This document shows, in pieces, positions 1-35,029 of a stretch of DNA of 64,000 bases. This DNA is from Paraphysomonas bandaiensis. Taxonomy: Eukaryota > Protista > Chrysophyceae. The stretch lies in assembly GCA_965644295.1 (NCBI GenBank), contig CBFFRP010000373.1, positions 275,522-339,521 of the forward strand, in the 5' to 3' direction. The position numbers and the translations under genes are program-made. Positions within the stretch are counted from its first letter, which is position 1, and each line of letters opens with the position of its first letter. A model generated the notes under the pieces. That model ran no database searches. It was not told the DNA's origin and saw nothing but the letters and a program-made list of their open reading frames with translations.

Positions 1-2807
1 CATTTCAACAATAACTGAACAACCTCTGCTGTAATATTCGAACCTGGGTCTGAAATTAACACTTCCGATATTCCGTACGTCACGAAATAAGAAAACAACG
101 CTCGCGCTACTCCAACCGCCGTGTAATCAGTTGCTGGATACAGACCAACCAAACGCGATGGCAATTGCTTTACAACATGGATACAACAATGCCCTTTCTT
201 GTCAGGAGGAGACACAGAGAGTGTGTCAAATCCTACGTAATGTCTACAATGCTCGGAGTCTAAAGCTCTGATAGGTGCCTGCAAGGAAGCACTCATTCCC
301 GCATTAAATTTCTGACAAATGGGACACCGATCTATGAAATCTTGTATCACCTCTGTGGTTAACTTGTGACCTGGAAATACCTTACTCAGCTTTAACCATG
401 TTCGTTTAACTCCATGGTGACCTATCCGACCATTGTGTACTAAGTCGAACGCCTCTTTGGGTGAACTAGGTTTTATACCTTGAGCCGCTAGTTCATCTAA
501 AGCTGCAAGTATCTCAGCTGGAAACGCTGCATAACAAGCTACATCGTCGGTTTCTGAACTCCATTCCCCTACTTGGTTAAGCTCAATAAGCTGATCATCT
601 GGTAGTAAGTCCGTATTTTCAAACATAACTACTTCACCACATGCGACACTTTCTTCTGGAAAACATTCCATACAAACAGACAATAACATAACATGAGCCA
701 CAGCCGATTCCTGATCCTTACGAGATAACCAATCAGCAAATCTATTTAACTTTCCCTTGAAGTGAAGCAAGTCGAAATTGAAATTCTGTATAAACATCCG
801 CATGCGTACTATTCTGTCAACAACCGAAACTTCCATCCATTTAAGATTGGCGTGATCCGTCATGATCGTGAACTTTTTACCTCTCAAATAATACGACAAG
901 GCATATACACAAAAGAATATTCCAAAACACTCCTTGTCAATAGTGGACCACTTCAATGTTGGTTCCGAAAATTTCTTCGACACCATTGCAATTACTTGAT
1001 AGAATTCTTGACCATTGGCATCAATGAAAATTTGTAATAACACACCTCCACATGCATAAAACGAAGCATCTGTCATCAAGATCCATCTTAAAGAATAGTC
1101 GGGATGATACAGAGTAAGAGATTTTAGAATCGCCTCTTTAAATCTACTAAATTCCTCCCTGTAATTTACTTTCCAACAATTCTCATTCCAGTCAAAATTC
1201 TTCTTCGTCATGTCATGTAACTTATGAGTAAGGTCACTATATAACGGAATAAAAGGTTTAAAATATATTGCCGCTCCAAGAAATCTCTGCATTTGTTTTG
1301 TCTTGTTTTTCCCTTCTGGAAATTCAATTGCAGTTACTGATAATTTTCGGGCCTCAGTTAATTGGTAAGTGTTGTCCTTGCAAAGATAGCCAAAAAATTC
1401 CACTGATGAATAGCCAAATTTGCTTTTCGACAATTTCAACACGACATTATAATAAGTACATTTTTTAATGACCTTCTTGAATTTCTCAATAGCATCCTGA
1501 TAATCATACGCTAACACCAGTAAGTTGTCAAATATCACCACCATCCACTCTGAGAATTCGTTGAAAATATCAGACACTACATGCATCAAAACTCCACTTG
1601 CCGGAGAAACTCCCTCTGGCATAAACTTTGGTTCGAACTGACCCCATGGAGTTTGAACTGACAACAGTGCTGAAACTGATTCATGAAGTCTAATACCATG
1701 GAAAGCATTACATATGTCTAAATCAATAAACACCTTATACCCAGCTGCTTTATGTAATTCTTTTATAACATCTGGTATGGGATAATGCGGACTTTCAATT
1801 TCTAAATTAACACGCCTGTAATCACCACATATTCGAATAAAAGGTTTCGTAGCCTTGGGTGCTACTACTATTGGTGATGCATAAGGACTCGTACTGGGAC
1901 GATAAAAGTATCCACACATCCTATTGAACTCCTCCTTAGTACGTTCATATAACATAGGTGGTATCCTTCTCATATTCTTTGGTTTAATTCTATCAGGAAT
2001 AGTACTTTTCACCTTTAATTTTAACTCAGGAACATGCTGAATTCCAGTCCACTCTCTAGGAACAAAGACGTCAACTGCATCCTCTCTCAAAACTCTTAAT
2101 ATATCAGTTTGTTGAGCGAAATCAGGATGTACTTTTGATTCTAGTTCACTAAAATATTTCTCCCTAGCCTCATCCACTGACTGTTCCAAAAAAGTCACTA
2201 AACTTCCAAAACTACATGGTTCGGGAATCATATCATCTTCCTCTGACTGTTCCGGAATTGGATTTTCCCAAGGATCACACACTGGTCCTGACGACATATA
2301 TCTCCTAAGTTCGTCAATGTCTTCACCAATATTGGCAAGAACTTCTATCTCATTTAAATTAACTGATTGCCCCGCACTCAGTGATGCTTTCTTAATCATA
2401 TTCATAAATAACTCGGAAAAATGCTCACAGATTGCCGGTAATCCTATAATAATATCCTTTGCCAAACCGTCCAAAACATACAGTGAAAGTTGTGCTTTGT
2501 AGGTCTTACCCTCATCTTCAAAAGCAATTGTAACAGGAATATATCCTTTAAGTTCAATCTGATGTCCGTCTGCTACTTTAACCCTCAACTTTTTATGTAC
2601 CATATCTTTTAACAATTTGTCCCCACACTTCTTAACAAAATTTGATGAAATAAAATTATCCGAAGATGATCCGGAATCAAATAAAACCATTTCCACATTA
2701 ATCTTATCACCACAATTATTTATTATCATTCCTTGCCTATGTACGGCATTGCGAAATCTGCTGGAAGTATCATTGTAATCTCGCATAGCCGCTATCAGTG
2801 ATTGTGC
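1..2807 (-). CDS. pol: Gypsy Pol polyprotein (partial, open to the window edge)
   Basis: Manual translation gives protease VLFDSGSS; RT FIDLDICNAFH, PWGQFEPKFMPEG and VIFDNLLV; RNase H LMTDAS and WSTIDKECFG; integrase H-NGRIG-H...CPIC and LISDPGS. It is in frame with gag after a TGA. It is absent from the ORF track, consistent with no stop before base 1. Confidence 0.92.
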
Positions 2808-4382
2808 TCAAAGGTCATCCAAAGGATTGTCATCCCCTTGTTGAACCTCTTCAACATCAGGTTGATCTCTGGTAAGAATACGTACATCACCAGGACGCTT
2901 TCTATCCCCAGGATATCTTTTCAATTGAGCTGGAGAATTACTGTATCGACGTTGAGGTGGTGCATTAATACTTGGTTTGGGCATTACTGTTAACCCCACT
3001 CTTTCAGTCATCTTCTTAAGAGCTTCAGTCAAAACAGCTTTATCATGTGAAAATTTACATGACTTATCTTTGCACCCACCATCTTGCGTCAATTCTCTAA
3101 AACATGGGGAAGATTTCAATACCTCAGCCGCATACAAATCTTCTTCATGTTTCAGCACGTTTTGCTCCTCATCACTCACAGATTCTGAGTCAGAAACTTG
3201 TTGCTCAATTTGGTGTAGTCGCTTATCTACAGCAGACGATTTTGTTCGAAAATTAAAACGACTTTTGAATTGATTATATTTTAACGACAAATCCCTAGTA
3301 ATCTTCAACTGCTTAAAGAATTCTTTCAGAAAAGCTTTTACTGAAGGGAAATTTTCCGACCTCATAAGTCTCTTAGTAGTATCTCTCATACACGCAGGAA
3401 TAAGACTCATCCACTGTTCCAACGAACCACCTCTCTTAGTCGTTACTAAAGGTATACTCTCATCAAGTTTGTTCATCTTAGCAGCCTCCTCCAAGAAATC
3501 ATACCGCTGATTGAACTTCGTTTCCAAAATACAAAGATCCTCATCGACACGACGAAAATCCTCCAACTTGTCCATTGTTACTCTGTACGGCAAACACGAC
3601 TCAAGCAACATCGAATTAAAATCCATCATATCCAAAGGTCTGAACTGATACTTCGCTGCCTCAATAACTCGCGTTACACTTGCATCTATGCATTCCAAAG
3701 GTTCAGTATAATCATCAGGATATAATTCCATCAACGTAAACCTAATCATTTCCTTAGCCCTGCCTTCCAACAATGTAAACACAGAAGGAATTGGTCCATT
3801 ATCACGACATTTCTCAAACTCAGCAATTCGTTCCAAGAAAACCAAAAACCCATCCAAAGTAATTTCCGACAACCTTATCTCCAAGTATGAATCGTCTTCT
3901 TTGGTCAACGTAACTTTAGCCTTCGGTTGACGATCGATTTCACGAAGTGCTTCCTGAATAGTCTGACGTTTAGGTCTGACAGGTGGTCGCTCCTCTTCAC
4001 TCCTGAGAGCTTGAGTAGCATTCAATACACCCTCACGCACAGCATTCTCTATACGCGTATGCAACAACTCAGGGTCAATATACTGCTGCTCACGTCGCTC
4101 AATAGTTGCGGCTACAGGCTGTTCACCATTCCCATGACCATCTGATTTAGACTCTTCAAACGGTATCTCCGAAAGCTGATCAGCTTGTATAATTTCTGAA
4201 TTAGCTCTCGATGACCTTCCAGATCTCCTCTGATTGATCTCCTCAAGACTCCGTTGAACATGCTCATTGAACGCCTGTTGCTGATGAAAACGCTGCTCCA
4301 TATACTCACGTTGCTCACGCATATACTGCATCAAGTCTTCCAGAGTAAGCTCTGTCTTCGCATCTCCTTCTGCAGGCTCCAT
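2808..4382 (-). CDS. gag: Gypsy Gag-like protein (524 aa) with N-terminal coiled coil and a C-terminal CCCH-type zinc finger
   Basis: The ORF lies between the LTR and pol and contains CFRELTQDGGCKDKSCKFSH (C-x9-C-x4-C-x3-H). Confidence 0.85.
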   Translation of the reverse strand: MEPAEGDAKTELTLEDLMQYMREQREYMEQRFHQQQAFNEHVQRSLEEINQRRSGRSSRANSEIIQADQLSEIPFEESKSDGHGNGEQPVAATIERREQQYIDPELLHTRIENAVREGVLNATQALRSEEERPPVRPKRQTIQEALREIDRQPKAKVTLTKEDDSYLEIRLSEITLDGFLVFLERIAEFEKCRDNGPIPSVFTLLEGRAKEMIRFTLMELYPDDYTEPLECIDASVTRVIEAAKYQFRPLDMMDFNSMLLESCLPYRVTMDKLEDFRRVDEDLCILETKFNQRYDFLEEAAKMNKLDESIPLVTTKRGGSLEQWMSLIPACMRDTTKRLMRSENFPSVKAFLKEFFKQLKITRDLSLKYNQFKSRFNFRTKSSAVDKRLHQIEQQVSDSESVSDEEQNVLKHEEDLYAAEVLKSSPCFRELTQDGGCKDKSCKFSHDKAVLTEALKKMTERVGLTVMPKPSINAPPQRRYSNSPAQLKRYPGDRKRPGDVRILTRDQPDVEEVQQGDDNPLDDL

Positions 4383-4447
4383 GACTCTTAGAACAGTTCA
4401 AAGGGCTCAATAACAGAATGAATGTTCTTATCAACTAGTAATATTAC

Positions 4448-4909
4448 TGTAGTTGTTCTTAAGAACAACGTATGCTCAAGCAAAAACAACACTGATCTAC
4501 AACGTTTTAAAAAGATTTTAAGTGCACGCCAGCGGGCTGCTACACTGTTGAACTCACCAGCGGGTGATGTTCCTCAACTCAGACGCAAACCGCGAAAGAA
4601 TTTAAATAAATCGTTATTTAAAACGTGTAATAGAAAAGTGAGTAACACTGCTATACAACTCTACAGTAACACACACATACAACATCATGTTCAGCATTTC
4701 ACTTCAGCACACAACACACCAGATCAGAAGTATTTTATCCGGTACGTATCTACAGCTTCAACACTCCGTGTATACACTGAAAGAGTAGAAACTGAAAAGT
4801 GTAACTGAAACTGAAAATACAAAAACACTCTGTACGTGTTAGAGAGTACAACAGAAGAGTAACATATCATACTACTACCAACGCAGAAAATAACCAGTAC
4901 TGCGTTACA
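4448..4909 (-). repeat. 5' LTR of the Gypsy element (462 bp)
   Basis: TG...CA ends on the - strand; homologous, inverted, to the solo LTR at 5311-5766. Confidence 0.85.
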
Positions 4910-5310
4910 AAAGATCGTTTATACTCTACAGAACGATCACCCAATTGAGCCTGCAGCAGGAGAAAACTCAGATGACGAGGACTACCAGTATCGACTCGAA
5001 CAGTATCAGGATGCGAAACGATATTATGATGAAGGTAATAACTACCTATGGTCAGTCATTTCAAGCTCTATCATTGGTCAGAATGAAGAGGCTGAAGGGA
5101 TTTTGGAGAACGTCCCCGATGGAGACGGTAAAACCGCCTGGACGGACTTGCTCAACCACTTCAAAGAAAAAACGACTAACGATGTAATCACCGATCTGAT
5201 TGGCCAGTTTCAGAGCATAAAAATCAAAAAAGGTCAGTCGATAATCAACTTTCTTGACGCTGTCGAAAAGCTCCGAAACAAGCTGATTAATTATGGTCAT
5301 CGGATAAGTG

Positions 5311-5766
5311 TGTCACGCAGTACTGGTTACTTATACTGCGTTATTAGTAGTATGATATGTTACTCTTCTGTTGTACTCTCTAACACGTACAGAGTGTTTT
5401 AGTATTTTCAGTTTTCAGTTTTATTTTCAGTTTCTACTCTCAGAGTGTTGAAGCTGTACATACATACCGGATGAAATACTTTTAATCGGGTGTGTTGTGT
5501 GTTGAAGTGAAATGCTGAACATGATGTATGTGTATGTGTGTGTTACACTGTAGAGAGGTATAGCTGTGTTACTCATTCTTTTCTATATAACGTTTTAATA
5601 ACGATTCAATTAAGCTCATTCGCGGTTTGCGTGTGTGTGGAGGAGTTCTACCCGCTGGTAGACTTAACAGTGTAGCAGCCCGCTGGCGTGCACTCTAAAT
5701 CTGTTAAAACGTTTTTAGAGAGAGCTTTCTGTCATTCACGTGTTTCTAGTTCTCAGAAACATCACA
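5311..5766 (+). mobile_element. Solo LTR of a related Gypsy family (456 bp)
   Basis: TGTCAC...ATCACA flanked by a 4-bp TSD AGTG (5307-5310 and 5767-5770). Removing it restores Copia gag GHRISDQDLISR. It is homologous to 4448-4909. Confidence 0.92.
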
Positions 5767-6236
5767 AGTGACCAAGATCTTATATCACGCATTCGACAAG
5801 GCCTGGTATCCAAAGAAAATATGACGTATCGTGAACTGGCGATCAACCTGCAGATGCACCCTATCGATGACTACAAAACACTCATACGCAGACTACGCGG
5901 ATTAGGAAGCTCGTCTGTTGGAATGCTCTTGTCAAGCAACGAAGAATCAAAAACCGACAGTATTCAGCTTGCAGCTTCAAAACCCCCATTTTCCCGAAAT
6001 AAAGTGAATTCTAAACGCAAAAAGGGGACATCTTTCAGAAACCGTTCCAATAAACCGAAACATGACAAGAGAGCTGACAAAGACATTAAGTGCTTCCGAT
6101 GCGATGGAAAAGGACACATCGCTTCAGAATGCAAACACTCCTGGGAAAGGATCCAACAAATGAAGAGTTCCTCCGGAAACAAATCAACCAGTAGGAAATT
6201 CAAAAAAGTTAGATTCCAGATCCACCAGAGCACTGA

Positions 6237-8185
6237 AAGCTGTTTTCTAGAACTCAATGGTGCCTCCTCTTCACAACTGCTGCTGGAGTGCCCATCATCA
6301 ATGCATACAGGCAACTCCTCAGAGCTCTCCATCTCTTTCATCCGACGACTCTTTCTTAAAGTAGACTTAGAATTAGTCAGGTCATGCACTACAGAAGCTG
6401 AAACTTGATATTTTTTTCCAGGACTAGGAACGTCGGTAGCAGCAACAGCAGTAGCTGGAAGCTTACTTGCTTTGTCCCGCTTTAGTGTCTCAATTTCCCG
6501 CTTCATAGACTGCACCAGATTCCTCATTTCATCAATCTGGGCTTGCTTATCCTCCTCTTCTTCCTCCTCCTCTTCTTCCTCCTCCTCTTCTTCTTCCTCC
6601 TCCTCTTCCTCCTCTTCCCCCTCCTCCTCCTTATTAGCTTTCATAATACTGGCGTATCTGGACTTGCACTGGCGCCGATTAGCTTTACCAAACTTCTTTT
6701 CAACATCTACCCAAGATATCCCCCCTCCACGAGCTGAACCGGTATATCTCTTTACTAGAACAATAAGTCTTTTATCGAGCTCATCGGTCCAGAGAACACA
6801 AGCAGCTCTCTTAGTAGCAGTCCCTGTAGATGCTTTCTTGTTGCCAGCACTTCGTGGATTAGGAGTTATCGGCGGAGAAGAAATAGTAGATACATCGCAC
6901 TCACTGTCCGCCTTCTCATTGTCTACGGCATTCATCGCGGTCTGCGATGCTCGTATAGCAATTCTCGTAGACCGAAGTGCCCCAGTCTCATCAGACACAC
7001 GACCGCCCGCGGCAACACCAGACAAGTCGACCACACTGGCTGCTCGCTTTGCTTTCTCTTCGAGATTTCCTCGTCGATCGCGGGCTTTCTGTGGATTTTT
7101 ACAATTCAAAGAAAGTCCACGACTAGGATTGTACTCCCAGCGATTGACTTGTATGTACTGCTGATACTGTTGAGATACGAAGTCTTCGTCGAGCTTGAAG
7201 TTGTCCTCTAAAAAGCTCTCCAAGCAATGTTTCTGTAGCCACTTCAACCCATGACGGATAAGATGAAACGAATTCGTGTCTACATCAAATAGTTGAATGT
7301 CTACCCTGGGTCGGTTGCAACGCGTGTGCCAGATCTCCCACAGTACCAGACGATGTGACAAGTTAATGTCTGTCTCAGCATCAGTACTTAATTCCGTATC
7401 ACCATCAGGAAGAGTGCGCTTTAGGGTACAGTGACAGATCCAACCCACATTGCTCCTTCGGTCTACCACTGCATGCGCATGGCTGTATCCATAGAGAAGT
7501 TTAGTAGGGTTCGGAAACAACTCAAAATATTTCTTCCTGTTTCCGGTGATATTGTCCTGATGGTTGACCACGGGCACAAAAACTTGTTCAACTCCATTGA
7601 CTTCGATGTCTAAACGAGCTCCCGCTTCCTTTGGAAATGGTGTGTCCAAAACATTACTTAGTATAGCACCCACTGTGTGCCCAATTCTGTGTCCACTATC
7701 CAGCAGCTGCTCACCGCTGTTCTCCTCCTCTTCTTCGTTTTCACTCCACACCTCTTCCTCCTCGGTACCAGCAGAATGCAAAGCAACCGGCTGTGTATGG
7801 TCTTGAAAATTAATGGAAGGAGTGGGAGAGCAGGGGGGATTGTAAGCCACATCTTCTTCTGGACCTGCAGGAGGTGTATGCTCAGGTCTCATACATTGCG
7901 CGCAGAGCTGGGCATAGCGATAGTCTGATCCATATTGGTCTTGTGGAAACTCTTTACCACAACCGCCAACTCCACTACAAACTACCATCGTGACTGAGGG
8001 AGTAGTCAAAGGATCAGCTGCGTCGTCAGATCGGTCCTCATCATCTGATATACACGCAAATCCCATTAAATACAATTAAGCGTGAGTTTTTGACAGGTAA
8101 CACCTGACAAATCACTGTAATGGGTGGTATCTTGGAGCAGCTGCTGGAATTGTTCTGCCTGTTTGTCATTGCTGGACTCAATCAT
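6237..8185 (-). CDS. Transposon accessory protein with a Cys4 zinc-finger-like motif, a Myb/SANT domain and a poly-Glu tract; C-terminus cut off at the element end
   Basis: ORF 5964-8075 has WTDELDKRLIVLVKRY...ISWVDVEKKF...RRQCKSRY (Myb-like) and CSGVGGC...CAQC. A probable first exon 8185-8104 (MIESSND...) joins in frame through a GT-AG intron at 8103-8045. Confidence 0.75.
6551..6630 (-). repeat. (GAG/GAA)n poly-glutamate tract
   Basis: Run of tcc/ttc triplets on the + strand. Confidence 0.9.
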
Positions 8186-8672
8186 AACCACAGTTGGGTT
8201 TACTTTTGCACACAACAGTTGTATGTTAACAATATTTCAAATTACAGTGACATTGATGACATTGCTCACAGGATGCGTGTTTTTGCTCGTTGGAATGCAC
8301 CTATCAAAAAAACATATGCAATCTCCTGCAGAAATTCAAAATACCGAGTGTGGGTGTATGTGGGTATCATCATGGATGACCATCGTATACCAATGTATGT
8401 ATATATAATAACAATGACAACTCCACAACAATATAGCATTGCCATTACATTACTGGCATGCTTTATGCATCTATTCCTACCTCATGTCGATAGTGTATTC
8501 TAGCAGCAGTTCGACAGCAGATGTCTTTCCTCGACAAGGTTAGTTTGCTGGTACTGTGTATTCATCTGTGTGTTCATGCATTACCAACCCACATTCTATG
8601 TGTGCATGTGTCTGATCAACACTGTGCTCATTGATGTAAGTTGAATGATACGTGTGAGTCGCTGGGGGCACA

Positions 8673-11667
8673 GTGGGGGTTCATCGCTTTCTTCGTGGAA
8701 AGGAGATTGTATTGAGATGCTTGACTGAGAGAGAGGAGATGACTAGGCGTGAGCGAAAGGATTATCTTCGAAACCTGGTTCGCAATTCCATTATCAGTAT
8801 TGACAGGACTGGTAGTGGAGCGCTATACTCAAAGTTTAACTGGAAAGTTGGTGATGTCTCTCAAGGTCAAGTAGAGGGCGTGTGCAAGAATTGTTTCTGC
8901 AGCTGCTATGATGTCTCGTCGTCTCATATTGATACATTGATAAAGTGAGGTGAAGAAGGGCGTCAGCCAAACAGCCCGCAAGCTAAGCGACAGGACGTCG
9001 TGTTTGCAGATTTTACCTCAATTGCGCCGTGTTGCTATGGCTCATGGTATTCATCTGACAAAGCAACAAGTAGCTGCGGCTGCATTACCTAACAGCCCTC
9101 ATGTGTTGACTTGTTATGGGTGGTTATGCACGTACTTTCGACTGACCGGGGACTACATTCCCAACAGTGGGGGAGAGATTCACCTGGAGCCCATTAAAAT
9201 AGTCCATGTATACGATGAGTACCACACTGATATGATGAATGCGGGAATTTTTCCTGTACATGTTGACATGTTTGCCAATATTTGGATGAAGTGCTTTGAT
9301 TATGTTAAGATCCGGGAGTTCAAGTCTGTATCTGGAAAGTGCAAGACCTGCGAGGCTCTTAGTTCACTGCGTCGAACTTTTAAATCGGAGCGCGAGCGGG
9401 AGTACGTCACCATGATGCATGCCCTCCATCGCACTGGATATATGGGAGAACGGCAAATGTATGCCGAGCGCCGGAACCAAGCCATAATGCAGAAGTCGAA
9501 ATTTATTTCCACGATTTCGGACGGCATGGCACAAGGACACAACCAGCTGCCCCATTTAGCCAACACAAATCAGTGGGCCCCGAAGGAGGCACTGCCTCAG
9601 CACCTCCAAGGTATACTCAATCATAATCGCGGGATGACTATTTATCGCACTTTCCACACGATCAACAACTGTGCAAATGTGGCGGTACATTCGTATCTCC
9701 TCCAGCTTGAGCAGATTATAGAGGTGGAAGGGAAGCTTCCAGACACAGTGTATCACCAAATAGACGGTGGATCGGAGAACACTGCTAAGGCATGGTTTGC
9801 ACTGTGTGAGCTCATTGTGGCAAGGCGGTTATGCAAGCGACTGGTGCTGACGCGGCTAATGGTCGGCCACACCCACGAAGATATAGATTCTAAGTTTGGA
9901 ATTCTCTGGAAGCGAATACGGAATCGCTTTGTGTACTCTCCGCAGCAGTATGAACACCAGATTATTACCGGACTGTCCACTAAGAAGCACAAATGCAACG
10001 TAGTGGATTTGATAGCTATTCCCGACTACAAGGCGCTTTTAGATAATTATGTTGATCCTTCGTTTGCCCCCATGACCAAGAACGATAAGACTCAGCTGCA
10101 GTGGGTATTTGAGGCAGTGACACCAGATGACACTTATTTTACCAATGGTGTCCGTGTGATGTATCGTGCCTATGCTGCAGAGGAGCATGTCAGCGTGTTC
10201 AAGGATTCCACGAAGCAATGCGGAATACATGCAAAGGTGGCAGATGTTTTCTGGTATCCCCACAAGAATCGCAAAGAAGGCATTATGGTGGACGGAATGA
10301 AGATATTGACTGCAATGCCAAACCAACGTCCGGCGCCTTACCCCTTTGTCCCAGGATCTCGTGCCTTACTTGATGACGTTATGGTTAAAGTTGAAACTGA
10401 GCTGAAGTCTATACATCCGACTATATTTAATGAGTGGAAGTTGTGGGAAGCAAGGATGCCTAAGTCAGACAATGTAAACGAGTACCTTGCAGATGGACAC
10501 CCCATGCGTTTTCCGCTGGGTCATATACTATTCAGTGATGAGCCTCCAGACCCTGCTCCAATAGAACCCTTACACGAGTCAGCTTTTTCAGAGCTACAGC
10601 GCATGCGAACCACTGATTGTGTTAAGTGGTCTCGTTGGGGGCATGACCGAGAGGATCACTCCACTGAAAACCATGCTCGTGTGGAATGGTGTTATATTGG
10701 TGGGGAGCGAATAGAGCAGAACGCGTTACCGTTACAGCCGAAGGTCTTTCGCAAGTGGAAGGAGCGGTCCATGTTGAAAGACGACGAGTTGCCAGGTGCC
10801 ACGTTTGTCCTAGCAAGACGTCGCCCCCACGACCCCGCTTCGCTATTCGACAGAGAGGGGCAGGTTTTTTCTCTGCGAAATGGCACGCAAAAGCGAGTTT
10901 ACTGGAAGTTTAGCCGAAATTCTATTGTTATCAATAACGACTCCGCTAACTCACTGCAGTCAAATTTGGATGCTGGACTTTGGAAACTTGGTAGATTGGA
11001 AGCCCCGTCGGATCAGGTCCCTGTCGACTATGCTCTAGATGATACAGAAGTGAATGACGCGGCCGCCGGGCCTCCTGTTGTGCCACTTGCTGCTGATAGT
11101 AATCGTGGAACTGGTCGCGAGGGAGTCCAACGAGGAGGTGGTAGAGGCCGTGGTAGAGGGCGTAGAAGGAATCGGCGTGTTGTGGAGTCGGACTCCAGTG
11201 ATAACGAAGAGAGCGCCGAGGAGGTGCCGGAAGACGACGCAGAGAGTGTGCCGGAAGACGACACAGAGAGCGAGCCGGAAGACGACACAGAGAGCGAGCC
11301 GGATAGTGATAACGTAGACAACTGCAGTGGCTCAGCGAGTGATGCTAGCAGTTCGGATGATGAAGTCGGAGTATCGTTTGAAGTAGGCAACAAAGTGAGG
11401 AATATCAGAGGTCTGAATGGTGTAGTTACTGCTGTTGTTGGTAAGTTGTATGATGTGAAGTACACTGATGGGCGCACCGATAGATTAAAGCGCAATCAGT
11501 TGAAAGCACCTGTAGTTAGAAAGAGTTCTGCGCCTAGATTGTCGTCTGCTGGGAACTACTCAATAATTGCACATGCAGACCAGTGGGTTGATAGTAGTAG
11601 TATTAGGGCAGACAACGTAGTTACTGGTAAAAGGAAACGTGCTGTTGGTGTGTCCTATAAAACCTAA
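8673..11667 (+). CDS. DDD-type transposase (GHTHEDID family, possibly Sola-related/DUF7869-like); 1-nt frameshift near 8943
   Basis: 905-aa ORF with CKTC...H, ISDGMAQ, QIDGGSEN and VGHTHEDID motifs, an RGRGRGRR basic patch, acidic repeats and a C-terminal SH3/Tudor-like segment. The upstream ORF 8673-8948 (CKNCF) joins it if one A is removed from ATAAAGTGAG. Confidence 0.8.
11220..11302 (+). repeat. 21-bp coding minisatellite (about 3.5 copies, E-S-[VE]-P-E-D-D)
   Basis: gccggaagacgac(g/a)cagagag repeated in tandem. Confidence 0.85.
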
Positions 11668-12387
11668 ATATTTATTAACACTACTGTACTAGTGCATTCA
11701 AGCACTTTTAGAACCATTCTACAAAAATTCTTAAAAGTCTAGTAAAATCTACTAGATTTTCCCAAATTTTTGAAAATTTCCCACGTTTGCATATTGTTTA
11801 CTTTGAAAACGACGACTCCGACCAGTTTACAGATTATAAAGACACTGGTCCACTACAACAGAAAGGACGAGACTTCGGAGGAGTCGGATATCCAACTAAC
11901 GACGAAACGAACTTCGCTTTTGATCAAGAAGCCGGAATGGGAACCCTTGATTCTGGCTGCACAGTCTCCATCACACCTGAAGCCGGATACATCACCAATT
12001 ATGAGGAATGCCTCACCGACATTCAAACAGCTAAGTCAGGATCGACTATGACCTCTTCACATGGAAGACTTGGTATTATCCCCAAGTTCAAGCACGTGGA
12101 CCATGCTTCAAGGACACTCGTGTCCATCAGCCAATTAGATGACCTAGGGTATAAAATCTTGTTCGGAAACCAATCAGTTGAGATATATAAAGATGAAATA
12201 CTGCTATCAAAGGGTAAGAGAGTTGGAGGCCTATACGAAATTCCGCTAACAGACCTCGGAACTCCTATTGACGAATCCCACCTTGCTTCAACTGCTTCAG
12301 GCCCACTCGCAACTCTAGCACATAAGAGATTGGCACATTCTTCAATTGGACTCATACAGAAAGCTGTACAATCGAAATTAGTAACGG

Positions 12388-12981
12388 AAGTAAACATTAT
12401 GCAATATCGTGGGATTTTTTTTTCCCACGTTTTTAGGAGTATTTGAGGAGTATTTCTCGTATACCGGTATATTGTACTATACTATACTGCTGCAGTATTG
12501 TGTATGTATTCGTTTGTACGAGTAGTACTCTATGCGCATAGAGGTGTATGTATGTGTGTGAGGAGGATATTTGAATTCTTGTGCACAGATCAGCACACAC
12601 ATACTCACACCACAGCACATGACATACATATACATGATACCATCATAGCACAGACTCCTCTGGTACGTAAGTTGTATATTAAATCACAAGTGGCTAGAAA
12701 CAATGTAGCTACGACTAGAGGGCAATGACTGCTGGCATCATGATGATCAATGGGTTGACAGTGGTAGTATGAGGGCAGGTAACGTGGTTGCTGGTAAGCA
12801 AAAAGGCGCTTCTGTTACATCCTATGAGACTTAAAATTATAATAAAATTAATATTTTTTGTTGTCTCTAACCCTAATACCACAAATAGAATTGTTTCTTT
12901 AACATTTCTACTTAAATACTGTAAATACTCCTAAATTTCCCAAAATATCGTAAAATTCCCACGTTTGCATAATGTTTACTT
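12388..12981. mobile_element. MITE / deletion derivative (594 bp) of the AAGTAAAC transposon family
   Basis: Perfect 17-bp TIRs AAGTAAACATTATGCAA and a 3-bp TSD CGG. Removing it restores Copia LVTGIKLT. The right part encodes a diverged transposase C-terminus (DQWVDSGSMRAGNVVAGK versus DQWVDSSSIRADNVVTGK). Confidence 0.95.
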
Positions 12982-22251: not shown

Positions 22252-23584
22252 CAGGCTTGCGTAACAATTAATTGGTTTTAAAAGTGATAATTTCAATTAT
22301 TATTATTGGTAAATGTTGCCAATTAATTGCAATTAATTGGCTGGCTAAATTATATATAGCATCTTACGATACTAGCTACTGATCTTAGGTACACACCCAT
22401 TATATGCTAGTATAGTAGTGTGGATTATGGATGTATGATGTGCAATGTGTACAGTCACGTTATTTATTAATCGTAATTAGGGTTAGTGTACACTTTAACC
22501 TCAGTATGCCAGAGTAATATATCATGTCAAAGATCGTTGGCAAAGAACAAACTGAGCACCTCCATAACGATGGTCTAGATACATAGCATATAATGTGATA
22601 GCATATTCAACTGCTTCGAAATATTCAAGTATATAGTAGTAGTGTAAATAATGACGTTGTCCGTTAAGTACCACTATCAGAGGAGGATCCGTAGTGTGTG
22701 TGTACAACAATAATAATAATGGACTAGAAGCATTATTGGATAGCCATACTTATCATTCTTATTTCTTCATCAGGATGGCATTGAATGAATTTGATTATTT
22801 AATTCGTCAGTACCCTGGGATGAAATTTCACCTGGGTGCAGACGCAGAAATTGTTCAAAATGCAGATTTCGAGAGAGAAGTAGTCAAAATTCAGCGCGGT
22901 AGAGAGGAAGAACTGAACCGCGCTGAAAAAGCGCAGGTGCGACGCTTTTTGATAAATGCTGTACCTGCACACGAAGGTGAACCTGATGAAGAGAAAGATG
23001 AGTAGGAGGACGACGAGGCCATTCGTTTACTTAAAGACAACCGAAAGCGCCAAAAAGCACGCATCAAACTTCCAACACGATATCGCTGCATAAAGTATTT
23101 GTATAGCACTACAAATGTTTGCGAGAGGTTGTTTAGCAGAGCTGAGATTGTTATGTCTATATATATGCAAGAGAATGGCACCTAAAGTAAACAATATGCA
23201 AACGTGGGAAATTATCAGAAATTTGGGAAATTCTAGTAGATTTTACTAGACTTTTAAGAATTGTTGTAGAATGGTTCTAAAAGTGCTTGAATGCAATAGT
23301 ATAGTGTTAATAATTATTTTTATTAATATTTAGGTCCTATAGGACACACCAACAGCAGTAGTAGACACCTTGAAATGTTGAATTTTCTGCGTGAAATTAT
23401 TAATGTTTCTTTGGGATGAGATTATAGTTGAGTAAGTAATTCAATAGAACCAAAGGCAATAAACTGGCAATTATTGCTAATTAATTGCATTTTGCCAATA
23501 ATTGGATGCTTGATTAATGATTGCAATTATTATTGGTAGACACCTGTCACCAATTAATTGCCAATTAATTGTTACGCAAGCCTG
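22252..23584 (+). mobile_element. hAT-superfamily deletion derivative
   Basis: 24-bp TIRs CAGGCTTGCGTAACAATTAATTGG; perfect 8-bp TSD CTAGCTAT (22244-22251 and 23585-23592); remnant of the hAT dimerisation domain (STTNVCERLFSRA...LEML) with stops. Confidence 0.93.
23185..23357 (-). mobile_element. Single-ended 173-bp fragment of the AAGTAAAC transposon inside the hAT element
   Basis: Matches the reverse complement of about 11640-11803 and interrupts hAT codons RMAP|RHLEML. Confidence 0.88.
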
Positions 23585-32543: not shown

Positions 32544-32809
32544 AAGTAAGTAAACATTATGCAAACGTGGGAATTTACGATATTTTGGGAAATTTAGGAG
32601 TATTTACAGTATTTAAGTAGAAATGTTAAAGAAACAATTCTATTTGTGGTATTAGGGTTAGAGACAACAAAAAATATTAATTTTATTATAATTTTAAGTC
32701 TCATAGGATGTAACAGAAGCGCCTTTTTGCTTACCAGCAACCACGTTATCTGCCCTCATACTACCACTGTCAACCCATTGATCATCATGATGCCAGCAGT
32801 CATTGCCCT
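32544..32809 (-). mobile_element. Right half of a split MITE
   Basis: Reverse complement of about 12719-12981. It is preceded by the TSD copy TAT and a duplicated AAGT. Confidence 0.93.
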
Positions 32810-34700: not shown

Positions 34701-35029
34701 AAGTAAACATTATGCAATCGTGGGATTTTTTTTTTCCCACGTTTTTAGGAGTATTTGAGGAGTATTTCTCGTATACCGGTATATTGTACTATACTATACT
34801 GCTGCAGTATTGTGTATGTATTCGTTTGTACGAGTAGTACTCTATGCGCATAGAGGTGTATGTATGTGTGTGAGGAGGATATTTGAATTCTTGTGCACAG
34901 ATCAGCACACACATACTCACACCACAGCACATGACATACATATACATGATACCATCATAGCACAGACTCCTCTGGTACGTAAGTTGTATATTAAATCACA
35001 AGTGGCTAGAAACAATGTAGCTACGACTA
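34701..35029 (+). mobile_element. Left half of a split MITE
   Basis: Nearly identical to 12388-12717; preceded by ATA, the reverse complement of the TSD TAT. Confidence 0.93.

Follow-up and report, generated by a model that had tools for sequence, protein, structure and literature searches.

Which superfamily of DNA transposons accounts for a two-gene element with a large transposase, a Myb-like partner and 3-bp target-site duplications? The question is raised by positions 6237-11803 of a stretch of 64,000 nucleotides from Paraphysomonas bandaiensis (contig CBFFRP010000373.1, positions 275,522 to 339,521 of the forward strand), here called the window. A first-pass annotation, made from the sequence alone, had proposed an undescribed transposon type that fits no described group. 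We conclude that 6237-11803 is probably a nearly full-length, disabled copy of an autonomous-type two-gene cut-and-paste family of this marine protist, whose transposase belongs to a divergent branch of the Pfam family DUF7869. On our best reading Sola1 is the nearest kin of DUF7869, with ISAzo13/Zator and IS630-Tc1-mariner more remote. The evidence is taken up below in the order transposase, element, accessory gene and superfamily comparison.

Two divergent open reading frames (ORFs) lie head to head within the element, as had been annotated, one of 905 codons on the + strand and a long one on the - strand that runs beyond 6237 into the flank. The superfamily placement depends on the former, whose features are:

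8950..11667, + strand: main transposase ORF, 905 codons (ORF list, Pfam scan, relatives).
9520..9888, + strand: catalytic core, with D191 at 9520-9522, D272 at 9763-9765 and D313 at 9886-9888 (invariant columns, AlphaFold2 (AF2) model, RNase H fold).
9580..10056, + strand: Pfam DUF7869 match, residues 211-369 (E 5.8e-23, 81.9 bits, cut-off 26).
9127..9330, + strand: possible winged-helix (RFX-like) DNA-binding region (weak Pfam and structure matches).
11371..11511, + strand: small C-terminal domain after the acidic tail, possibly Tudor-like (weak hints).

DUF7869 was the sole Pfam family matched by the 905-residue ORF, and all 55 of the aligned relatives matched it as well. It is a large family (2,719 representative clusters at E<=0.001 in an exhaustive search), of which no mention was found in the literature searched. 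The three acidic motifs reported at first pass, ISDGM, QIDGGSEN and GHTHEDID, are present at residues 189, 270 and 306. Alignment of 55 proteins showed D191 (in ISDGM), D272 (in QIDGGSEN), H307, H309 and D313 to be invariant, the three aspartates being invariant also in a set of 50 sequences, and the catalytic triad is spaced D-80-D-40-D. GHTHEDID had been listed at first pass as an acidic motif; its invariant acidic residue is the last, D313, and E310 is variable. The nearest relatives of the transposase (59-63% identity) come from metagenomes, and the clade with DGGSEN and GHTHEDID motifs is large, uniform in these motifs, and mostly marine and metagenomic.

The AF2 model of residues 60-470 had a predicted local distance difference test (pLDDT) score of 91, and its best matches among solved structures were Mos1 and Metnase/SETMAR (Foldseek E 8e-4; VIA Z 10 over 173-176 residues). 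Retroviral integrases scored at similar Z and Sleeping Beauty lower (Z 7.7). The catalytic core is thus modelled as a compact, mariner-like RNase H fold without an insertion domain. For the possible winged helix, RFX_DNA_binding (Pfam) was matched weakly by 7 of the 55 relatives (best E 2e-4), and structures of RFX DNA-binding domains matched at Z 4.9 over model residues 1-68. Tudor families were matched in two of the 55, with DUF7141 at E 0.007. A Ulp1 protease domain (Peptidase_C48, E 1.6e-17) was seen in three of the 55 related transposases.

The transposase had been described as a protein of some 900 or more residues. Its gene is not one intact ORF, as a frameshift has split the N-terminal part from the 905-codon ORF:

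8739..8948, + strand: N-terminal transposase part with a conserved CxxC-containing region (by-eye alignment with homologues P0003, P0005, P0009 and P0149).
8942..8944, + strand: A-run causing a +1 frameshift (one A more than in the contig of run X6, which is another strain's).

Homologues are longer by ~40-100 N-terminal residues, which the window encodes at 8739-8948 in another frame that stops at a TGA owing to the frameshift; the whole transposase has ~975 residues. The frame is continuous in the run X6 contig, where one letter at 8942 is omitted, and run X1 agrees with the window. The extra A at 8942-8944 may be either a real frameshift of the strain or a homopolymer error of the assembly.

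The extent of the copy was determined by a DNA search of the whole 62.6-Mb assembly with the element, followed by comparison of flanks, and its outline is as follows:

6237..11803, + strand: transposon copy in the window (genome-wide DNA matches, flank comparison, Copia empty site).
6234..6236: TGA target-site duplication, left (flank comparison).
11804..11806: TGA target-site duplication, right (flank comparison).
11757..11803, - strand: right terminal inverted repeat, with AAG at the tip and two direct copies of TGGGAA at positions 21 and 40 from the tip.
8186..8738, no strand: intergenic region between the two divergent start codons (position only).

From its position, the intergenic region is presumed to be a bidirectional promoter of both genes. 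The host of the insertion is a Copia element, and TGA stands directly on both sides of the insert. Since the uninterrupted Copia site, CACTGAAAACG, is found in seven paralogous Copia copies, the insertion and its 3-bp duplication are real.

The right end of the copy is complete, and its 17-nucleotide terminus, AAGTAAACAWTATGCAA, occurs six times in the window versus 0.07 expected. The left end at 6237 (AAGCTGTTTT...) had likewise been given as a family terminus, which it is not: leftward of AAGCTGTTTT, mutually homologous sequence continues in eight other copies (C92, C405, C412, C297, C255, C117, C167 and C288). In C297, C255, C117 and C92 this additional part is ~500 bp long and closes with a proper inverted repeat, so that the left inverted repeat and ~500 bp are absent from the window copy. 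The - strand gene has thereby lost its 3' end: in the full copies its ORF goes on through the missing part (in-frame reading). The TGA duplication is nevertheless perfect. This would fit transposition with an internal AAG used as a false end, and it would fit equally a later deletion between the terminal AAG and the internal AAG, with 3 nt of microhomology. Without a left inverted repeat, with its accessory gene cut and its transposase frameshifted, the window copy is disabled and cannot move by itself.

Complete elements are ~6 kb long. In the complete copies of this genome the ends begin AAGTAAACAATATGCAAACGTGGGAAA, with inverted repeats of at least 27 nt whose first letters are AAG, and six of eight end pairs are flanked by 3-bp duplications (AGT, TAG, CTA, CGG, ATG and AAA). 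Together with those of the window and of relatives described below, nine duplications were recorded (TGA, CGG, AGT, TAG, CTA, ATG, AAA, TTT and CCA); they show no evident sequence preference and none is TAA or TTA. The AAG...CTT ends and variable 3-bp duplications proposed at first pass are thereby borne out. Three duplications had been proposed for the window itself, of which TGA is confirmed by the Copia empty site and CGG by a neighbouring short element, a miniature inverted-repeat transposable element (MITE):

12388..12981, + strand: non-autonomous MITE, 594 bp (both inverted repeats, CGG duplication, inside the same Copia).

The third, TAT, was not found in the window. The copies at 32548 and 34701 are halves of one rearranged MITE, and their flanks are AGT and ATA.

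The two halves of this 594-bp MITE, at window positions 32548-32809 and 34701-35029, lie 1.9 kb apart; the former corresponds to MITE positions 332-594, inverted, and the latter to positions 1-330, and both inverted-repeat tips face left. The mismatched flanks and this arrangement suggest a rearrangement or an aberrant transposition event. A solitary family end of 173 bp, which shares 87.5% identity with the main copy's right end, was also seen at 23185-23357; it is flanked by CTA, and no partner end lies within reach. Short non-autonomous copies are numerous, and both the family and its short derivatives abound in this genome as well as in marine metagenomes.

The first-pass annotation had called for full-length copies with both ends and both genes. 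One was found in a metagenome contig of the Joint Genome Institute (JGI) (L069), which holds a complete, apparently intact element of 5,844 bp at 2488-8331 with both inverted repeats. The element is bounded by AAGCAAACAATACGCAAACGTGGGAAA ends, with TTT on both sides; it encodes a transposase of 892 residues and an accessory protein of 662 residues in convergent orientation, and the insertion is identical in four samples. A further metagenomic family (L073-L076) has ends AAGTGAACAG... and ...GTTTGCTT, its flanks being shuffled between contigs and pairing as CCA. The same protist genome holds a second DUF7869 family, whose transposase is only 40% identical to that of the window. Its end, AAGTTGATGTGATG... 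(the family is also written AAGTTGATGTG...), occurs 98 times versus 0 for a control pattern. In full this end reads AAGTTGATGTGATGAACAAACCTGG (e.g. L024:4108-4132), and at C346, C93 and C132 ORFs of the second family extend over 718-728 codons.

AAG-first ends are kept in three families or species, and so is the layout of the hexamer TGGGAA, which has a background frequency in the window of 0.15 per 260 bp. All families compared have one TGGGAA at position ~21, counted from the tip. A further copy follows in direct orientation at position ~40 of one end, and in inverted orientation at position ~34 of the other. The two ends of C297 (L056:1959 and 7268), L069 and L073 differ in a conserved way, a direct TGGGAA pair versus a short palindrome, GTGGGAAA...TTTCCCAC. 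The palindromic end is always beside the accessory gene and the direct-repeat end beside the transposase, though gene orientations vary between the lineages.

The accessory gene occupies the left part of the element, with these features:

8104..8185, - strand: exon 1, ATG at 8185-8183 (spliced contig of run X6 and conserved N-terminus).
8045..8103, - strand: intron of 59 nt, GT..AG (junction 8044/8104 in run X6; ends CT..AC on the + strand).
6237..8044, - strand: exon 2, its 3' end cut by the truncation of the element.
7890..7982, - strand: Cys-rich motif, C-x4-C ... C-x2-C (conserved in the homologues of L069, L073, C125 and C210).
7077..7619, - strand: conserved core domain (homologue alignment; AF2 confidence is low here).
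6606..6809, - strand: Myb/SANT-like three-helix domain (Pfam, AF2 and structure matches).

After splicing the start codon is the ATG at 8185 and the N-terminus reads MIESSNDKQAEQFQQLLQD..., which is conserved in homologues; at its other end the truncated ORF reads into Copia antisense as far as 5964. The Cys-rich motif had no Pfam match and, to judge by its pattern of cysteines, may be a zinc ribbon. A feature search of the Atlas with the core domain gave no usable match. Pfam matches to Myb reached E 0.001, below the cut-off, so that of the Pfam searches of both proteins called for at first pass the one with the transposase gave a significant family and the one with the accessory protein did not. 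The Myb/SANT-like fold is nonetheless supported by the AF2 model (pLDDT ~90), for which the best structural matches were nearly all Myb/SANT (Cdc5: Z 7.2, root-mean-square deviation 1.2 Å over 50 residues); outside this domain the model, made from six sequences, is unreliable. The protein also has a basic stretch, a poly-Glu run and a coiled coil. The poly-Glu run is encoded by a long GAG/CTC repeat (window 6544-6637), at which contigs break in all four runs.

Homologues of the accessory gene adjoin related transposases in this genome (C117, C125 and C210), and matches to its Cys-rich N-terminal part were found near transposase fragments (C77, C20, C336 and C73). The homologue in L069 matched at E 1.6e-42. 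In L069 and L073 the gene is downstream and convergent, and in L081 it is upstream and divergent, as in the window. When the L069 accessory protein was compared with a large protein collection it matched only itself, a search dominated by low-complexity words and uninformative on distribution. Because homologues stand beside related transposases here and in three metagenomic lineages, the gene is, on this sequence evidence, a conserved component of the sub-clade and not a one-off capture of a host gene, in keeping with the two-component element first proposed.

Where, then, does the family belong? Motifs were compared with the curated cores of Sola1-1_AP, Sola2-1_HM, Sola3-1_HM and Zator-1_HM printed in the supplement of PMC3985635. 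The Sola1 core has DNCGGQN at its second D and GHT 34 residues later (GHS in an aphid relative) (PMC3985635). The window family resembles it in having a DDD triad with a GH[TS] motif shortly before the third D, in the 34 residues between second D and GHT, which equal those of Sola1-1_AP, and in its long elements of ~5-6 kb (a mean of 5,445 bp is given in PMC10294476). It is unlike Sola1 in its AAG-first ends and in its conserved Myb-like accessory gene. One relative, from a contig (L088) of a metagenome-assembled genome (MAG), has the first-D motif IIDGMDQ, as here, together with a Sola1-type LDNCGRENKN, and it matched DUF7869 at E 1.6e-34 over only 96 residues. Since a protein with the Sola1-type DNCG scores this well, the DUF7869 model seems to be centred on Sola1-like sequences, with the window clade a divergent branch. 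The claim that the element fits no described group is therefore not upheld, given its DUF7869 match, its Sola1-like triad, GHT motif and spacing, and a weak likeness to ISAzo13. We favour a divergent sub-lineage close to Sola1, set apart by its duplication length and accessory gene, over an unrelated new type; we would describe it as a Sola1-related lineage with the duplication length of Zator.

In L088 the DUF7869 fragments lie in pieces beside proline-rich tandem repeats, and the MAG is labelled Nitrospirales, with a 16-Mb bin that is too large. This contig and the short MAG contigs L083-L087 are probably eukaryotic DNA in bacterial bins. Most 'bacterial' matches of the family, which come from short MAG contigs or from the 16-Mb bin, are accordingly probable eukaryotic contamination and not bacterial homologues.

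Several points weigh against the placement near Sola1 and against the two-component reading of the element. The curated Sola1 and Zator cores were compared by eye and by motif only, without an alignment score. The second-D motif here is DGGSEN, which is more like Zator and ISAzo13 than like the DNCGGQN of Sola1, and the duplications are 3 bp long without AT preference, whereas Sola elements make 4-bp duplications, AWWT in the case of Sola1 (PMC3845634, PMC10741241). The likeness to ISAzo13 is itself weak: PF07592 had no match in the window protein, the window's genome, the 55 relatives or five MAGs. No accessory homologue was detectable in the flanks examined of the more distant DUF7869 elements (L077, L080 and the second family), and the role of the accessory protein is judged from co-occurrence and domain type only. 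That run X6 is RNA is a label guessed by software. This genome yielded no fully intact copy, and no transposition event was observed.

A bolder proposal, which we put forward only tentatively, is that the DGGSEN/GHTHEDID clade is a distinct, unnamed two-component lineage, widespread among marine protists, that links Sola1 to ISAzo13/Zator, makes 3-bp duplications and depends on a dedicated Myb-like partner acquired independently of PIF/Harbinger. We found no description of an element that unites a DGGSEN-type DUF7869 transposase, AAG ends, 3-bp duplications and a conserved Myb-like partner.

Bacterial ISAzo13/TP36 (PF07592) has its eukaryotic kin in Zator, a superfamily defined by 3-bp target duplications. 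That the window element belongs to the Zator superfamily is unlikely, although a number of observations point that way. Duplications of 3 bp are common to the window family, Zator and ISAzo13 (PMC10045372, PMC12905397), the spacer to the third acidic residue is short, and the second-D motif is of DGG type (DGGSEN here, DGGPDEN in Zator-1_HM, DGGGSN in ISAzo13). The NCBIfam ISAzo13 model matched three of 50 relatives (best E 1e-4), and hhalign against six ISAzo13 transposases gave a match that is weak but in register (E 0.007 over 105 columns), with second D on second D and D313 on the catalytic E of the ISAzo13 motif KIEHR. Among predicted structures the neighbours of the AF2 model were DUF7869 clusters first, then three clusters without a common Pfam family, and then ISAzo13, the nearest named clusters (TM score ~0.5 by query; by target it reached 0.74 for a cluster of 256 residues); in one Atlas cluster DUF7869 is found in 95% and PF07592 in 11% of members. 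Yet the lack of any PF07592 match in the window protein and its 55 relatives stands against membership, as do the third residue, D here and E in Zator/ISAzo13, the Sola1-like GHT that precedes it, and the first-D region (FLSQDDKARVPIG) and third-motif region (NAPGRSAF) of Zator-1_HM, both unlike the window family. The best DUF7869 score, moreover, fell on the relative with the Sola1-type DNCG motif. Amphioxus Zator-1 uses TAA/TTA targets and has 33-bp repeats (PMC12905397), and no mention of a second gene in Zator was found in the literature examined; the first-pass exclusion of canonical Zator holds. The family could instead be an unnamed lineage of superfamily rank, neither Sola nor Zator, whose likenesses to both are common to all short-spacer transposases with an RNase H fold. 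This would suit the mixed motifs, with a second D of Zator type and a third of Sola1 type, the duplication length unlike Sola and third residue unlike Zator, the silence of the searched literature on DUF7869, and the size and uniformity of the mostly marine clade. We consider it quite unlikely, as the DUF7869 match is strong, the same model covers relatives with Sola1-type motifs, the spacing from second D to GHT is that of Sola1-1_AP, and some repeats of a diatom are already classed as Sola by standard pipelines (PMC7466962).

The pairing of a transposase with a separate Myb/SANT-like protein, together with 3-bp duplications, recalls PIF/Harbinger, a likeness that is an analogy of design and not evidence of common descent. 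The accessory protein of the window family far exceeds the PIF/Harbinger partner in size and contains further conserved domains, and the targets show no TWA preference in any of the nine duplications. Neither the IS5-like DDE_Tnp_4 of PIF/Harbinger (no Pfam match at E<=1) nor the Tnp2-type Transposase_21 of CACTA (CMC) was matched, nor any transposase family of Pfam except DUF7869, the ends are AAG-first and not CACTA, and the 40-residue spacer and mariner-closest fold fit neither group. A PIF/Harbinger-type or CACTA-type element, excluded already at first pass, is refuted by the Pfam scan, the duplication sequences and the spacing of acidic residues, and we give it almost no weight. With IS630-Tc1-mariner the transposase shares the compact RNase H fold and the ~40-residue spacer between the last two acidic residues; it is unlike that group in that the protein is much larger and each element has two genes, and Tc1/mariner makes 2-bp TA duplications and gave no sequence-level match. 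It might finally be held that the Myb-like ORF is a fragment of a host gene or a chance neighbour outside the element, in view of its Pfam score below the curated cut-off and the more distant DUF7869 elements without a homologue in their examined flanks. This is scarcely credible, because the gene lies within the inverted repeats in the complete copies C117, C297 and L069, and homologues partner transposases of 43-62% identity in other organisms, in divergent or convergent orientation. We thus retain the reading of a two-gene, DUF7869-type family near Sola1.

Sola elements, described by Bao and colleagues in 2009, are said to be without similarity to other transposases. If the placement is right, what is likely the Sola core is still listed in Pfam as a domain of unknown function. 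An enzyme that unites Sola1-like with Zator/ISAzo13-like features and makes 3-bp, not 4-bp, duplications offers a handle on the relationships of these superfamilies and on the length of the cut stagger. Should this be a second, independent pairing of a transposase with a Myb-like protein, the two-component design of PIF/Harbinger would be a recurrent solution, and that design could be tested on the intact 5.8-kb relative, which has both genes and both ends. The family and its short derivatives are abundant, and annotations should treat them as transposons rather than host genes.

As to mechanism, the transposase would combine a DDD core of RNase H fold with an N-terminal DNA-binding region, an acidic tail and a small C-terminal domain. 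It would bind the subterminal TGGGAA repeats (~20-45 nt from the tip), cleave at the AAG/CTT ends and insert the element by 3-bp staggered cuts. The Myb-like protein would, by analogy with the partner in PIF/Harbinger, aid end recognition or nuclear delivery. A complex prediction with transposase residues 1-640 and accessory residues 1-340 returned a score of 0.00 ('no answer') and has no bearing either way.

Marine metagenomes and poly-A metatranscriptomes contain pieces of the element, and two internally deleted forms were seen. In one, position 8270 is joined to 9912 with the filler AGAGAT (contigs of two DNA runs), and in the other, 7987 is joined to 10557 (a contig of a poly-A metatranscriptome). 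Deletions with filler are typical of gap repair after the excision of cut-and-paste elements.

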